This document shows positions 2,209-20,969 of a stretch of DNA of 64,000 bases, one piece after another (within the stretch, counting starts at the first letter, position 1; each line of letters opens with the position of its first letter). A program made the position numbers and the translations under genes. The DNA is from Scyliorhinus canicula. Taxonomy: Eukaryota. The notes beneath the pieces were generated by a model. The model was given only the letters and a program-made list of their open reading frames with translations, ran no database searches and was not told the origin of the DNA. The stretch lies in the NCBI RefSeq assembly GCF_902713615.1, contig NC_052147.1, positions 21,626,276-21,690,275 of the forward strand, written 5' to 3'.

Positions 2209-2406
2209 CACGTGCGACTCATGGGGGCCGCCATCTTGGCAATCCTCCCCCATGCGGCCAGCCATGTGCGAGTCAAGGGGGCCGCCATATTGGACGCCAT
2301 CTTCCTCGCCGCCCACCACGTGCGATCCACTGGGGTGGCCACCTTGGACTCCATCTTCTTCATCATCCGGCACGTACGATCAACGGGGGCCGCCATCTTG
2401 GCCATC
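2209..2406 (+). repeat. Four ~54-57 bp tandem units inside Gypsy gag
   Basis: Repeated CAYGTRCGA..CA..GGGGGCCGCCATCTTGG unit, translating as (T/M)CDxxGPPxWxPSSS-like repeats. Confidence 0.8.
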
Positions 2407-3945
2407 AACCGAAGTTCACCTCGACGACTACGACCTCAGTGGACAGTCATCACGGGGCCACTCCAGCACTGCTGATCGAGCCGGCGACTACCCACAACTC
2501 AACGCAGTCACATTGGACCAGTCGCGTCCGAAGCACCTCCAGAGCTTGATGATGTCCGTTAAAATCAAAGGGTGCCGGACACCGTGCCTCTTCGACTCCA
2601 GGAGCACCGAGAGCTTCGCACATCCTGACCTGGTTAGACGCTGTTCGCTCCCTATCTTCCCTGCATGGCAAACTATCTCCCTCGCCTCGGGCTCACACTC
2701 GGTCCACATACAAGGGCGCACTGTCGCAACCCTAACAATTCAGGGCGCCAGCTACTCTAATTTCCAGCTGTACGTACTCCCCGACCTCTGCGGCCCACTA
2801 TTACTTGGGCTCGATTTCCAATGTAATCTCAAGAGCCTCACACTCACTTCGGCAGACCCCTACCTCCACTCACTATCTGCAGCTTAACGACTCTAAAAAT
2901 CGACCCCCCTCCGCTCTTCGCTAACCTGACGGCTAACTGTAAACCAGTAGCCACTCTCAGCAGGCGGTACAGCCTGCAGGATAGAGTATTCATCAGAGCC
3001 GAAGTCCAGCGGCTCCTGCGTGAGGGGGTCATAGAGGCCAGTAACAGCCCCTGGAGAGCTCAGGTGGTGGTCGTCAAGACCGGAGAAAAGTTCCGGATGG
3101 TGGTTGATTATAGTCAAACCATTAACCGGTTCACGCACCTTGATGCGTATCCCCTCCCCAGAATTGCAGACATGGTCAATCAGATCGCACAGTACCGCAT
3201 ATTCTCCACGGTGGATCTGAAGTCTGCTTACCACCAGCTCCCAATCTGCCCGGAGGACCGCCACTACACGATGTTCGAGGCAGATGGCCGCCTCTTCCAT
3301 TTCCTCCGGTTCCCTTTGGCATCACGAATGGGGTCTCGGTGTTCCAACGAACAATGGACCGAATGGTGGACCAGTACGGGCTGCGGGCCACATTTACGTA
3401 CTTGGACAATGTCACCATCTGCGGCCATGATCAGCAGGACCACGGCGTCAACTTCCACTGATTTCTCCAAACCGCCCAGAAACTCAATCTCACCTACAAT
3501 ATGGAGAAATGCATTTTCCGCACTACCAGACTAGCCATCCTCGGCTATGTCATGGAAAATGGGGTCCTGGGCCCCAACCCGGACCGTATGCGCCCCAGTA
3601 TGCGGACAAAGCCCGCCCACTATTTAAGACCACAATCTTCTCACTGTCAGCTGAGGCCCGCCAGGCCTTCAACTGCATCAAGGAGGACATCGCCAAAGCC
3701 GCCATGTGGGCGGTGGATGAATCCGTCCCCTTTCAGGTGGAGAGCGACGCCTCAGAGGTCGCTCTCGCCGCCACTCTGAACCAGGCAGGGAGACCAGTAG
3801 CTTTCTTCTCCCGAACTCTCTCCGCTTCGGAACTTCGACACTCCTCAGTCGAAAAAGAAGCTCAAGCCATTGTGGAAGCCGTACGGCACTGGCGGCACTA
3901 CCTCACAGGTTTACCCTCATCACCGACCAAAGATCGGTTGCCTTC

Positions 3946-5136
3946 ATGTCCGACAACGCGCAAAGGGGCAAAATAAAAAATGATAAAATCTTGCGGTGGA
4001 GGATCGAACTCTCCACCTATAATTATGATATCATATGTCAACCGGGGAAGCTCAAAGAGCCCCCAGATGCCCTGTCCCGCGGCACATGCGCCAGCGCGCA
4101 AGATGACCGCCTGAAGGCTATCCACAATGACCTTTGCCACCCGGGGGTCACCCGGCTCGCCCACTATGTCAAAGCCCAAAATCTGCCTTTCTCCACCAAG
4201 GAGGTAAAAGCCATCACCAGGAATTGCCCGATCTGCGCGGAGTGCAAACCGCACTTCTGTAGACCAGACAAGGCCCACCTGGTAAAGGCTTCCCGGCCCT
4301 TTGAACACCTGAGCATCGATTTCAAAGGGCCACTCCCCTCGACCAATCGAAATGTGTACTTTCTTAACATCATCGACGAATTCTCCCACTTCCCCATTGC
4401 AATCCCGTGCCCCGATATGACCTCCCACACAGTCATCAGAGCCCTGCACAGTGTCTTCACCCTGTTCGGTTTCCCCAGCTACGTACACAGCAACAGGGGT
4501 TCATCCTTCATGAGCGATGAGCTGCGTCAGTACCTGCTCGACAAGGGCATCGCCTCGAGCAGGACTACCAGCTACAATCCCAGGGGGAACGGGCAGGTGG
4601 AGAGGGAGAACGCGACGGTCTGGAGGACCGTCCTACTGACCCTCCGGTCCAGGAATCTCCCGACCTCCCACTGGCAGGAGGTCCTCCCTGACGCGCTCCA
4701 TGCGATTAGGTCCCTCCTATGCACCACCACCAACCAGACCCCTCACGAACGATTATTTGTTTTCCCTAGGGGCACTACCACGGGTGCTTCACTCCCATCG
4801 TGGTTGAGGACACCGGGCCCAGTTCTCATCCGGAAGCACGTCTGGACACACAAAACGGACCCGCTAGTAGAGAGGGTGCTCCTGCTTCACTCGAACCCCC
4901 ACTACGCCATTATTGAATACCCCGATGGCCGTCAGGACACCGTTTCCCTCCGGGACCTGGCGCCTGCAGGATCCACCACTACCACCACCACCGCCGAGGT
5001 ACCCCTCACACTACACCCCACCCAACCCCCCACGCCCTGCGCCCCCGCGCCTATAGGTTCCCTGCCCACGCTCTGCGCCCCTGCGCCTATAGGTTTCCTG
5101 CGCCCCACCTTTGCTCGTTGCACCGGCCAGGAATGA
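3946..5136 (+). pseudogene. Gypsy pol 3' part (end of RNase H plus integrase), open 396-codon frame
   Basis: HHCC motif IHNDLCH...CPIC; core SIDFKG...HSNRGSSF...QVERENA, with the second catalytic Asp appearing as Asn. Cut off from upstream pol by frameshifts. Confidence 0.9.
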
Positions 5137-5612: not shown

Positions 5613-5863
5613 TATATCCAATGGCCTCCTGTCATTCTGCGTCATTGCCGTCCTCCCCAGCAAGTAGTCACGATTAGTACTCCTTTTGAAAAATATGAAC
5701 TTGGCAGAAGGGCTTCTGTGGGGAGCCCAAGAGGTGAGTAGCCATCTTTGCTCACAGGCAAAGAGCCCTGGGGAGCTGGGCTTGCCGCCCCAGTGCTCGG
5801 CGGGAGGTAGTGGCCCTATGGCCAGGGGAGTGGACCCCAGCTGAAGGTGTGGGACCTTCCACT

Positions 5864-6066
5864 AGGGGCTGGTTTAGCTCAACTAGGGGCTGGTTTAGCT
5901 CACTGGGCTAAATTGTTGGCTTTTAAAGCAGACCAAGCAGGCCAGCAGGACGGTTCGATTCCCGTTCCAGCCGCCCTGGACAGGCACCGGAATGTGGCGA
6001 CTAGGGGCTTTTCACAGTAACTTCATTGAAGTCTACTCGTGACAATAAGCGATTTTCATTTCATTT
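5864..6066 (+). mobile_element. Short tRNA-derived SINE (head B + tail Y)
   Basis: GGGCTGGTTTAGCTCACTGGG A box, GGTTCGATTCCC B box, tail CAGGCACCGGAATGTGGCGACTAGGGGCTTTTCACAGTAACTTCATTG...GTGACAATAAG(CATTT)n; 21-bp duplication of the 5' end (5861-5902). Confidence 0.85.
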
Positions 6067-6313
6067 TCCGCAGGGGTGGGTCGTCATGGGAGGGTGGAGA
6101 AGAGGTGCTGGTGGGGGGGGGCAACCACGCATGCACCACCATGCCTACCCCAGGATCGTGTACCCATTCTGGGGTCAACACTTGTCCCTGCCCGTCTGTC
6201 CCACCAACCATCCATAATCCCCATCAACTGCCTATGGCCGTGCGACTGAAGGCTATCGCTGGGGAATTGGAAATCATGGTTAAGTGACCACTTCTCACTG
6301 CGCACAATCAGTA

Positions 6314-6501
6314 TGGGTTGGTTTAGCACAGGGCTAAAGAGCTGACTTTTAAAGCAGACCAAGGCAGGCCAGCAGCACGGTTCAATTCCCGTCCCAGCCT
6401 CCCCGAACAGGCGCCGGAATGTGGCGACTAGGGGTTTTTCACAGTAACTTCATTTGAAGCCGGCTTGTGATAATAAGTGATTTTCATTTCATTTTCATTT
6501 T
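6314..6501 (+). mobile_element. Short tRNA-derived SINE (head B + tail Y)
   Basis: Near-identical to 5864-6066, with (CATTT)n tail. Confidence 0.85.
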
Positions 6502-6981: not shown

Positions 6982-7528
6982 CACATCCCCGTCCGTGTTG
7001 GTGAACGCTCTGTCCTCAGCCACCCCCGGCGCCTCCAGGGCCTGCTCCTCGAAGGTGGTGAGGATTCTTATGTTCGGCACCCCACCACCAGTCTGGGCCC
7101 TCTCCCGGCAATTGTAGGAGAGACTTTCCTGAGGAGACATAAAGAGGGCATTGTTAGTAATGTGTGGTTCACAATGGTGGGAGGGAGGGTGTGAAGGAAG
7201 GTTTGGGGGGGGGGGGTTTAAGGGAGAGGGGGTGGATGGAAGGTTAGGGGTCACGTGGAGAGTTGGGGGTGGATCCTCGCATGGAGCGGAACCGTCTCCG
7301 GGGGGGAGGGGCGGGGATGGTGTCTATTCACTCGTGCTGCCCTGTTCTTCTGGTCACACTCCTGGCGCTCACAGCTGCCACCACCTCGTCCCAGGCAGCC
7401 CTGGATGCCCTGTGACTGACCCTCCTGGACTCTTGGGGGAACAGGGCTTCTCTCCTGGCCTATACCGTGTCTCGGAGCCTGGTCAGATCTGCATCCCAGA
7501 ATCCTGGGGCCGTTCTCCTGCTCTCCAT
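6982..7528 (-). pseudogene. Harbinger-type Myb/SANT-like DNA-binding protein, two exon remnants (7528-7332, 7128-6982)
   Basis: Exon 1 MESRRTAPGFWDADLTRLRDTV*ARREALFP...AAWDEVVAAVSARSVTRRT; exon 2 ESLSYNCRERAQTGGGVPNIRILTTFEEQALE. GT..AG intron between them and a GTAAGC donor after exon 2. Premature stop; the QCRKK.NDL segment is missing. Confidence 0.8.
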
Positions 7529-7534
7529 AAGCAA

Positions 7535-8410
7535 AGAAGATCTGAAAGAAGAGGAACTGAAGCCCTCAGAAGAGGCAATGGCAAATCTCAGAGTTGGCAA
7601 TGGAAGACCTCAAAAAATTGGCAAAAGATGACCTGAGAAAGAAGTCAATAGAAGGCCACAAAGGAGGACAAAAGACTAACCCCAGAGAGAGGGAAATGAA
7701 AGAACCCTGAAGGCGAGCAACAAAAGACCCCAGAAGAAGGGCTATGGAAGACTCCAGAAGGAGGGCCATGGAAGACTCCAGAAGGAGGGCCATGGAAGAC
7801 TCCAGAAGGAGGGCCATGAAAGACTCCAGAAGGAGGGCCATGAAAGACCCCGGAAGGAGGGACATGAAAGACCCCGGAAGGAGGGCCCTGAAAGACCCCT
7901 GAAGGAGGGACATCAAAGACCCCAGAAGGAGGGTCATGAAAGACCCCAAAAGGAGGGCCATGAAGGACCCCTGAAGGAGGGCCATGAAAGATCCCAAAAG
8001 GAGGGCCATGAAAGACCCCAAAAGGAGGGCTGTGAAAGACCCCTGAAGGAGAGCAACAAAATACCCCAAAAGGAGGGCCATAAAAGACCCCTGTAGGAAT
8101 TCTCCGACCGTTCGAAGCCTACAGAATTCTCTGGTCACTCCAGCAGCACACCCCCACCTGCAAATTTCCTGGTGGCATGGGGTGGCTACAATGGGAGTTA
8201 CCATTGACAGAGGTGGGTGCAGAGAATCCAACTGCTAATGAACGACGCGCTATCTCCTGCCGTTGAGAAACATGCCGTTGCGAGGCTGGAGAATCCCTCC
8301 CCCAGAAAGTGGACAATGAAAGACCTCAGAAGGTGGGCAAAAAAAGACCCCAGAAAGAGGACAATAAAAGACCTCAGATGGACAAAAAAGACCCCACAAG
8401 AAGGGCAATG
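7535..8410 (+). repeat. 24-bp minisatellite, consensus ATGAAAGACCCCAGAAGGAGGGCC
   Basis: About 16.5 units in exact 24-nt phase from 7696 to 8092; degenerate units at 7535-7695 and 8299-8410; split by a MITE. Confidence 0.95.
8096..8298. mobile_element. ~200-bp MITE inserted in the minisatellite
   Basis: Termini GAATTCTCC ... GGAGAATCC; similar to 17141-17312, 34722-34893 and 37992-38201. Confidence 0.75.
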
Positions 8411-9040
8411 AGAAAAGTGCAGAATGGAAACAAGTCAGCACTTCATTGGAAACAGACCTGACTAACAGTGAAGCCAAAAAGAGTTTGGCTTAAGTTAAGT
8501 CAAGTAGAAATGAAAGTTCTATTTGTGTAATGTATACATCCAGTAAGAACATGATGGATTTCCCTCGGAACGAAACACAGAAATTAAAGAAACTGGGAAC
8601 TATTGAACACAAAGAAGAATGAATAAAAAAGAATTAAAGCTCTGGAGAAGACATTGAAACAACAAGATGAAATGACTGACGGCAAACTCAGAGAATAAAG
8701 AAGTTGCAAACAATAAGTTACAAAATAAGTTGAGAAGAATGAGAAATTAATGAGACAATGTAGAATAAGCTGAACTCCATGAAAAAGAACACATCCAGTG
8801 AAGAATTATATTGGAGAGTAAGAGCTTGAAGAAGAGAAGCTTGGCAATGAGAAACTAACCCAAGAGGTAAAAACATTGAAATTGACATCCGAATCAGCAA
8901 TTCAGACAGGGAAAGAAACTGAGATGACGTGCCAAAAGAAGACTGTTGAAACGGTTGAATGGAAAAGCAAAAGAGCTAATGTGATAAAATGTTGATGATA
9001 AAGATGCTGAATTGAAATGCTGGAAAGAGGAGCAACTTTA
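8411..9040 (+). pseudogene. SYCP1: SYCP1-like processed pseudogene fragment (C-terminal part of the coiled coil)
   Basis: 8822-9035 translates (two frameshifts, one stop) to ELEEEKLGNEKLTQEVKTLKLTSESAIQTGKETEMTCQKKTVETV/MEKQKS*CDKML/DKDAELK, in register with recalled vertebrate SYCP1 EIEDKKISEENLLEEVEKAKVIADEAVKLQKEIDKRCQHKIAEMVALMEKHKHQYDKIIEERDSEL. No introns. Similarity in 8411-8820 is weaker. Confidence 0.75.
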
Positions 9041-9396
9041 GCACACGGCCTAAGTACCAGAAACAGAGTACCATGACCATTCCTTCACATGTGACAGACC
9101 AAGGTTGTGGAAGGACTGTCAAGACATAAAACTTTGTTGTATTGCGATATGTGCCTGCATGCATTATAATGTAAGATGCTCGGCAGATCACCGTCAACGT
9201 GGGACTGGAGAGTGGCACTTCCCACAGAGTGCTCTATGTAGTCACATGGTCTGAGAACACTCTGGGATAGAACTTGGCAAGCAGAGTTTTTGCTTGGGAC
9301 AGCTCCATGCAAGGCCACACTTGGAACTGTGCATGGTTAAAACCTACCAATAATTGTGGGTATGTTTAAACACACGAACCACAAGATCTCATCAAT

Positions 9397-9670
9397 GATT
9401 GGATTTGTTTATTGTCACGTGTACCGAGGTACAGTGAGAAGTATTTTCCTGCGAGCAGCTCAGAAAGATCATTTAGTGCATGAAAAGAAAATACAGAACA
9501 GGCCAACGCAAGGTCAAACATGCAATGGAAGATAAAAGAGAAAGGTTAATGACAGTGTTAGTGTTAGAATTAAATTTTAAGACATTAGTACGGTTACTGG
9601 AGATGTAAAAAGAGGGTCTGTTTGGGAGAGCTCGCAGAGAGTCGACACGCTCCGGCGCCATCTTGGAATG
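9397..9670 (-). mobile_element. Rex1/Babar-type LINE 3' end or derivative
   Basis: GATTGGATTTGTTTATTGTCACGTGTACCGAGGTACAGTG is the reverse complement of the 3' end of the element at 12334-12846. Confidence 0.7.
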
Positions 9671-9744
9671 AGCCACCACCGCTGCAACAATAAAAAAAAC
9701 ATATTAATCACGTGAACATAAAGTTCGGTAGTGGATCAAGTTAG

Positions 9745-12333: not shown

Positions 12334-12846
12334 GCATCCTATCGGGCTGCATCACAGCCTGATATGGCAACTGCTCGGCCCAGGACTGCAAGAAACTTCA
12401 GAGAGTCGTGAACACCGCCCAGTCCATCACACGAACCTGCCTCCCATCCATTGACTCCTACACCTGCCGCTGCCTGGGGAAAGCGGGCAGCATAATCAAA
12501 AATCCCTCCCACCCGGCTTACTCACTCTTCCAACTTCTTCCATCGGGCAGGAGATACAGAAGTCTGAGAACACTCACAAACAGACTCAAAAACAGCTTCT
12601 ACCCCGTTGCCACCAGACTCCTAAATGACCCTCTTATGGACTGACCTCATCAACACTACGCCCTGTATGCTTCATCTGATGCCAGTTCTTATGTAGTTAC
12701 ATTGTATACCTTGTGTTGCCCTATTATGTATTTTCTTTTATTCCCTTTTCTTCCCATGTACTTAATGATCTGTTGAGCTGCTCACAGAAAAATACTTTTC
12801 ACTGTACCTCGGTAGACGTGACAATAAACAAATCCAATCCAATCCA
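12334..12846 (+). mobile_element. Rex1/Babar-type LINE 3' fragment
   Basis: SILSGCITA*YGNCSAQDCKKLQRVVNTAQSIT...SHPAYSLFQLLPSGRRYRSLRTLTNRLKNSFYP; 3' UTR ending GTGACAATAAACAAATCCAATCCAATCC. Confidence 0.88.
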
Positions 12847-20103: not shown

Positions 20104-20969
20104 TCCAATATTGTAGATCAAGTGGGCGTACGAAATGCTGACAACAAAGGCAGCAATGTTTCATTACCCTGCACCCAATGCCCTTGACCTTGATGAGTAC
20201 AAAACTTTGCGTTAAGAGAGAGAGACAAAGATGCGGAGACAAAGAGATGGAAAGAGACAATAACAGACAATGAGGAAAAAAGATGGATAATAAGAGAATG
20301 AAGTGAATGGCGACTGATCTCAAGTTTTTGATTACCGACACACCATAACTATAGCCTTTGTGTCAAAATATTCAAAAGGCAACACTGCACAACATCACTA
20401 TTAACATACCGTGGCCTGCTGACAAAACCTTTAATTAATTTAAACAAAAGCAAACCTCCAGTAATAAAAAAGAAAATTCATCAGCAGTTTGTCCCCTTTT
20501 GCCTTCCGCCCTTCGCTTCTAATCGCAAAAAAACAAATATCTCAGAAGAGACCTTTCAAAGGAAACCACAGATATTTATTTCAGGGGACTGGAATAATGG
20601 CAATGTTATGTAAGTTGAAGTTCTTCAATAATTTATCAGCAAAGTCTTTCAGTGAGTGACAGGATTTTTCTGTTCTGCTCGTACGTGGTCAGGTTCTGTC
20701 CAGTTGCATCTTTTCTGATGGACCGCTTCTGTTCAAAACAGCATAAAATATTTCATTAGCAAAATATTGTGAAATAATTTTACATGTAAGCTCTGAAATA
20801 TTTGGAACATTTAGAACATCAGGTGCAAATTACAATTTCATTTAACTCGAAGTGTGATGAGTTGCTGGGTTCCCACTCTGACTGTTATAGGTACTGACTA
20901 ACCTTTGTATTAAATATGAACAGTTTCAATGCCCTCTCTCTTGACGATCATTGTATGGCCTGATGCAGT

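Follow-up and report, generated by a model that had tools for sequence, protein, structure and literature searches.

The window (the whole 64-kb stretch of DNA analysed here) contains a decayed piece of the gene for synaptonemal complex protein 1 (SYCP1), which forms part of a multi-copy unit of approximately 0.95 kb. The unit comprises degenerate 24-bp repeats beginning at approximately 8316–8370, an 86-bp spacer, the SYCP1 fragment and a tail that reaches to approximately 9288 (Table 1).

Table 1. Features of the SYCP1-derived unit and its immediate surroundings (window coordinates)
Feature	Position	Strand	Remarks
24-bp purine-rich minisatellite, approximately 23 units	7547–8098	+	Purine-rich block begins near 7528
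Old insertion splitting the 24-bp array	8100–8295		Repeat register broken; present in second species
Degenerate remainder of 24-bp repeat	8296–8410	+	TRF 8300–8396
Spacer within multi-copy unit	8411–8496	+	Holds KQVSTSLETDLTN; depth 98–220; not demonstrably SYCP1
Spliced SYCP1 cDNA-derived segment	8497–9038	+	aa 456–706, isoform X4
Match to skate exon	8597–8632		Exon starting at L001 31266
Match to skate exon	8629–8703		Exon starting at L001 31564
Match to skate exon	8711–8769		Exon starting at L001 33472
Match to skate exon	8826–8869		Exon starting at L001 42860
Match to skate exon	8867–8973		Exon starting at L001 45056
Match to skate exon	8982–9036		Exon starting at L001 46550
Tail of multi-copy unit	9039–9288	+	Depth 67–515, against 8–27 in the next bin
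Low-copy flank	9289–9396		Depth 8–27 (bin 9288–9341)
Ultra-abundant retroposon fragment, outside the SYCP1 unit	9397–9525	-	Inverted copy at 12697–12839 (+)

The large minisatellite has one frame open for 138 aa, made up of QKEGHERP-type units, with no homologue among proteins of 76–241 aa and no Pfam match. Only the degenerate repeats at 8316–8410 were seen in the multi-copy unit, the large array lying outside that observation. At the left edge of the array, where the units are most diverged, positions 7597–7644 (+) read AMEDLKKLAKDDLRKK, compared with AMKDTNKSLKDELKKK in SYCP1 (aa 749–764), 9 of 16 residues being identical. This likeness has p = 0.004 against a chosen region of 85 residues but p = 0.08 against the whole protein; at the latter value a derivation of the minisatellite from aa 749–764 is not established, and the resemblance may hint that the array grew from another piece of SYCP1 cDNA.

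The neighbourhood is rich in other repeats. A Gypsy-type LTR retrotransposon Pol region, distributed over several ORFs (aspartyl protease, reverse transcriptase, RNase H and integrase), occupies 2252–5136 (+), and the 5′ part of the element may extend beyond the window. Tandem copies of a tRNA-derived SINE, 428 bp apart and 86–91% alike, lie at 5858–6068 and 6307–6496 (+), and ARAGORN places a tRNA-like fold at 5888–5975 within this tandem. Three DNA runs gave the retroposon fragment at 9397–9525 a summed depth of about 1e6. Reads from poly(A) RNA cover both of its strands, and in other copies its end adjoins short TTGGA-like repeats. Ten pieces of the flanks, taken from both strands, gave no Pfam match; comparison of the flanks with a protein atlas gave low scores only; and Rfam returned chance-level matches only, with no tRNA-like part in the unit.

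Identity and spliced origin of the SYCP1 segment

A prior reading made from the sequence only had proposed that a SYCP1-like retrocopy, missed by ORF prediction, occupies 8411–9040. The peptides it quoted were all recovered where it had placed them, and the stretch is purine-rich as described (A 45% and G 22%, compared with A 26% and G 23% in the whole window). The likeness to SYCP1 is far above chance, tests with Pfam, PDB, phmmer, a profile HMM and shuffled DNA being in agreement, and the best matches in the first four identify the source as SYCP1 and not another coiled-coil protein or a transposable element ORF1. The longest open piece (8822–8992, 57 aa) has SCP-1 (PF05483) as its top Pfam match (E 2.9e-4), at 19.5 bits and so under the gathering cutoff of 23; with the longest piece below this score and the frame broken, the copy is not a functional member of the SCP-1 family. 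The top PDB match of the same piece is the SYCP1 structure 4yto (E 3.4e-3), and alignment to 4yto also confirmed the conserved SYCP1 motif KEIDKRCQHKIAEMVALMEK quoted in the sequence-only reading. Searched with phmmer against 1.84 billion representative proteins, the 57-aa piece returned two matches in total. The better of these, XP_038676775.1 (E 2.2e-6, 63% identity), is isoform X4 of S. canicula SYCP1, a protein of 954 aa that itself matches Pfam SCP-1 with E 1.8e-131.

An HMM built from six chondrichthyan SYCP1 proteins and run against the 3341 stop-free six-frame pieces of the window matched only three of them, at 8627–8695 (1.4e-5), 8822–8992 (6.7e-12) and 8988–9038 (7.5e-5), all on the + strand and colinear with the order of the protein. 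Frameshift-aware protein-to-DNA alignment of 8625–9040 scored 293, compared with 41.5 +/- 6.1 for shuffled DNA (z 41). In the final alignment, SYCP1 aa 456–706 (isoform X4) correspond to the segment at 8497–9038, and 119 of the 174 aligned codons (68%) are identical to XP_038676775.1, although the exact parent may have been another SYCP1 sequence. The secure core is 8597–9038; the part at 8497–8619 is weak by itself, and the single test that backs it is that of colinear position (z 4.2, p = 0.0005). Of the claimed extent, 8497–9038 is demonstrably SYCP1 and 8411–8496 is not demonstrably so; KQVSTSLETDLTN (8419–8490) gave p = 0.19 at the colinear position and matched nowhere else in the protein. 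A weak SYCP1-like match at 20224 was rejected as chance similarity within a GA-rich run.

Exon structure was taken from the little-skate gene (L001, 61 kb), the plover gene (L002, 26 kb) and the catshark isoforms, which together supply the intron positions given here. The parental region consists of many small exons, in agreement with the sequence-only reading, those of skate and plover encoding 20–70 aa each. Skate and plover borders fall on identical catshark residues (494|495, 518, 545|546, 566|567, 587|588, 608, 648, 684 and 715), and indels among S. canicula isoforms X2–X5 independently mark four of these (494|495, 545|546, 566|567 and 587|588). The window DNA matches six separate little-skate SYCP1 exons, which are ordered and abutting here, with 75–91% identity, while the skate introns between them measure 0.2–4.8 kb. 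Six junctions have 0 nt between the exons (8598|8599, 8708|8709, 8769|8770, 8816|8817, 8869|8870 and 8973|8974); two further intron positions fall within deletions of 11 and 44 aa, with no additional DNA there. Since six conserved intron positions are passed without any intron, the SYCP1 segment came from spliced RNA, in keeping with the reverse transcription of a spliced mRNA that had been suggested. The source is SYCP1 and its parental region is multi-exon, the two points on which the sequence-only reading had staked itself.

The segment lacks both ends of the SYCP1 mRNA. Its 5′ homology limit, aa 456, lies within 1–2 residues of an exon start (aa 455), a coincidence to be expected about one time in six by chance, and its 3′ limit, aa 706, lies inside an exon, nine residues before the exon end. 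Comparison of 9040–9400 with SYCP1 aa 700–954, and with the skate gene and its downstream flank, found no likeness.

Coding capacity has been lost through stops, frameshifts and deletions: along 8497–9038 there are approximately ten frameshifts, approximately four in-path stops (8544, 8624, 8761 and 8977) and 77 residues deleted relative to SYCP1, counts that vary with the gap penalties of the alignment. The largest gaps are of 44 aa (aa 594–637, at about 8835) and 11 aa (aa 509–519, at about 8630). Both ends of the former fall inside exons, so that it represents a later deletion rather than the skipping of exons. The copy in the window is a dead scrap of SYCP1 and no hidden gene. One oligo-dT RNA run of unstated tissue had zero reads on 8100–9395, which is no proof of silence, and no RNA run (tissues unstated) is on record as containing the unit.

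Some features of the parent gene were observed in passing. In S. torazame (GCA_047496885.1) the SYCP1 gene spans approximately 749 kb for an 829-aa product; the little-skate and plover genes measure 61 and 26 kb. In S. canicula isoforms X2, X3 and X5 a 35-residue segment (DKVEILLQEIK...AESKE) occurs twice in tandem; S. torazame, batoids and chimaera have it once, and isoform X4 is without either copy; the duplicate may reflect an exon duplication in the catshark SYCP1 gene. A predicted metaclust protein of 1309 aa (P0101), in which a reverse-transcriptase domain (PF00078) is joined to an SCP-1 domain, aligns with catshark SYCP1 at 35% identity across 91% of the query; it probably reflects the fusion of a gene model with an intronic LINE.

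Copy number, lineage and age of the unit

Logan contigs from one DNA run of the first species (X1) and two of the second (X5, X10) were aligned to 8100–9700, and only contigs at least 90% alike were considered, which favours one subfamily. Judging by the pattern of sequencing runs and the best protein match, the first species would be S. canicula and the second S. torazame. Summed contig depth is not copy number, and our estimate of copies rests on counts of distinct contigs. Summed depth was 65–515 over 8370–9288 in the three runs and two species, and 6–27 in the flanks (8100–8153, 8208–8315 and 9288–9341), single contigs having 3–8. At the left edge of the unit, approximately 8316–8370, depth in X1 climbs from 12 to 39 to 98 across 8262–8423; where it falls on the right there is a weak 6-bp hairpin (9281–9299). 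The insertion at 8100–8295 looks mostly single-copy at 90% likeness or above, with a depth of 6–20; a piece of about 50 nt within it (8154–8207) has a depth of about 850–1700.

The window base is in the minority at many positions. An 8656 G>A difference occurs in 32, 25 and 27 distinct contigs of the three runs respectively, and 8855 C>T in 19, 23 and 15; at 8414, 9030, 9033 and 9252 the majority of contigs likewise differ from the window, each of the majority-variant sites being represented by 11–32 distinct contigs. As one diploid locus gives at most two contigs, these counts mean tens of copies. The multi-copy span overshoots the SYCP1 part by approximately 130 bp upstream and 250 bp downstream; with non-SYCP1 sequence multi-copy on both sides, the repeated unit takes in part of the 24-bp repeat and the 250-bp tail. 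No second copy of the unit lies within the window, where the tail matches nothing else, and the tail shows no SYCP1, Pfam or Rfam similarity. The lone retrocopy implied by the title of the sequence-only reading has to be given up, the stretch being multi-copy in two species with up to 32 contigs at one base. Its other suggestion, that the segment travelled as cargo of a mobile unit, fits better, since multiple copies were seen in two species not only of the stretch but also of the non-SYCP1 sequence beside it.

Indel differences among the aligned contigs are few, and some second-species contigs extend across the point of the 44-aa deletion. Another copy, read between the sides of a joint 8614->9399, has GSARRIKAPEKT at the window's 11-aa deletion, so that the deletions of the two copies coincide in position. 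Pieces lost in the window persist in further copies, for instance SKNLRSEVK, corresponding to SKNLQNEVK of SYCP1. From the shared lesions and the scarcity of indels we infer a single origin, the copies descending from one already damaged progenitor and decaying separately thereafter.

Over the secure columns, identity of the copy is highest with SYCP1 of S. canicula (67%), followed by S. torazame (64.5%), three batoids (55–57%), a chimaera (48%) and a bird (35.5%). Among the columns fixed differently in sharks and batoids, it has the shark state in seven and the batoid state in two. A maximum-likelihood tree, in which sharks are represented by the two Scyliorhinus species only, joins the copy to their SYCP1s (support 82/89) in an unresolved three-way fork, with an end branch of 0.41 for the copy compared with 0.014 and 0.044 for the functional genes. 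Judged by these alignments, the cDNA would have arisen on the shark lineage after its split from rays, and its origin would be several times older than the divergence between the two Scyliorhinus species.

Second-species contigs pass from the unit into both low-copy flanks, at 8100–8447 (93% identical), covering the insertion, and at 9158–9423 (94%). The latter extends from the unit across the flank at 9289–9396, as does a first-species contig without differences. By reaching from the unit into both flanks, the second-species contigs place this insertion before the species split, and as a shared, dated insertion it is a possible marker for the two species.

Origin and amplification of the unit

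The SYCP1 and spliced origin of the segment, its decay, its multi-copy state and its occurrence at this locus in the second species too are shown by the observations above. For the rest, the order of events and the route of amplification being what we infer, we consider the following course probable. Germ-line reverse transcription of a spliced SYCP1 transcript would date to a catshark ancestor that lived after sharks and rays had separated but well before the two sampled species did. The cDNA fragment, bearing exons for aa 456–706 and missing both mRNA ends, would then have joined a unit of approximately 0.95 kb together with degenerate 24-bp repeats, the 86-bp spacer and the 250-bp tail. Dispersed copies of this non-coding unit, in the tens, would then have been produced, most likely through its retroposition as a non-autonomous element. 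They would have been decaying ever since, the copy in the window being a fixed, silent member with presumably no function of its own. A non-autonomous, retroposon-like element is our best guess at the nature of the unit. LINEs account for 34% of the S. canicula genome and have been recently active (PMC11979771), representing a potential source of reverse transcriptase. Retroposition is favoured because LINEs are abundant and active, the flanks are single-copy within approximately 1 kb, and no tandem back-joint was present among the best-supported joints. Against it, no terminal repeats, poly(A) or target-site duplication were found at the unit: there is no A-run at 9038, 9288 or 9396, and direct repeats bracketing the unit, whose left terminus is imprecise (approximately 8316–8370), were none of them convincing.

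These same absences are what would be expected if the unit had multiplied at the DNA level, by segmental duplication or by hitch-hiking in a larger DNA element, and the many internal deletions in which copies differ also speak for such a process. Yet a block that returns to single-copy depth on both sides within approximately 1 kb would be very short for it, and the best-supported joints include no back-joint of a tandem array; we regard DNA-level multiplication as a real rival, though an unlikely one.

Also unlikely is a conjecture with two forms: either the minisatellite, SYCP1 cDNA and tail together constitute a catshark-specific composite retroposon resembling SVA, or they belong to a family of germ-line template-switch mosaics of meiotic transcripts. 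In both cases tens of partly antisense copies could feed small RNAs directed against SYCP1.

That the segment is simply a piece of mosaic cDNA, derived by template switching or from circular RNA, would account for the loss of both mRNA ends, for a 5′ limit so close to an exon start and for the weak likeness of the minisatellite edge to aa 749–764. We think this improbable: exon order is strictly colinear with no back-splice junction, the spacer, tail and minisatellite match no part of SYCP1 and no other protein, the exon-edge coincidence is no greater than the one in six already noted, and the minisatellite likeness reaches only p = 0.08 across the whole protein. A wrap-around or circular-RNA reading of 8419–8490 in particular found no support: the spacer, which precedes aa 456, has no match in any exon further downstream.

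Meiocytes express SYCP1 at a high level, and many independent retrocopies of so abundant a message might also yield a multi-copy signal. Such copies should not, however, extend beyond the SYCP1 part into the same upstream and downstream sequence, nor be at least 90% alike when protein identity between each of them and the parent is no more than about 68%, nor have deletions in common, and we judge recurrent retrocopying very improbable. A lone classical processed pseudogene would suit the intronless and decayed state of the segment, but is scarcely tenable given that one position is covered by as many as 32 distinct contigs within one run and that the unit recurs in two species. Finally, the possibility that the likeness is a chance product of purine-rich, coiled-coil-like sequence, a transposable element ORF1 or a DNA-level copy of SYCP1 exons is negligible, for although composition is biased and the Pfam score lies under the gathering threshold, the alignment stands at z 41 over shuffled DNA, the SYCP1 HMM matches nowhere else in the window, and six separate skate exons match in DNA and abut here.

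What appeared to be a hidden meiotic gene is repeat-borne debris and fairly ordinary, and its novelty is modest. For annotation, SYCP1-like matches found in the genomes of catsharks need masking as members of a repeat family. Were the unit indeed a mobile composite with host cDNA at its core, it would provide a rare case, from outside the mammals, of a gene fragment taken up by a retroposon, and it might also give rise to germ-line small RNAs directed against a core gene of the synaptonemal complex.

Comparison with known systems

The hominoid elements SVA, LAVA and SVA_F1 with its MAST2 exon are composite, non-autonomous retroposons that unite a VNTR with gene- or cDNA-derived parts. The shark unit resembles SVA and LAVA in having a minisatellite beside a host-cDNA-derived segment, in being non-coding and in having many copies. 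It differs in its copy number, which is only in the tens, and in that neither poly(A) nor target-site duplications nor a 5′ hexamer came to light; furthermore, of the minisatellite, only degenerate 24-bp repeats were observed in the unit.

The segment is a fragment of a processed pseudogene. It has neither the poly(A) of a classical retrocopy nor a convincing target-site duplication, and its behaviour is that of an interspersed repeat of low copy number. Like vertebrate processed pseudogenes, it is an intron-free copy of a spliced germ-line mRNA, lying apart from the exons of its parent and broken by stops and frameshifts; unlike them, it has no mRNA 3′ end, no poly(A) and no target-site duplication that could be seen, and it belongs to a multi-copy unit that includes non-SYCP1 sequence. 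Approximately 14,000 LINE-mediated retrocopies have been reported in cartilaginous fishes, in a preprint that does not mention SYCP1 (10.64898/2026.06.26.734816). Pseudogenes derived from circular RNA, which are defined by a non-colinear back-splice exon junction (PMC4897178), are similar as exon-only cDNA fragments without either mRNA end or poly(A), but the shark segment has no such junction and its exon order is colinear.

In amphioxus, a complete, functional, single-exon SYCP1 retrogene replaces its parent (PMC5803294). The two cases share the parent gene and the RNA-mediated mode of copying. The shark copy, by contrast, is partial, dead and multi-copy, and its intron-containing parent persists, both S. 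canicula and S. torazame having a multi-exon SYCP1.
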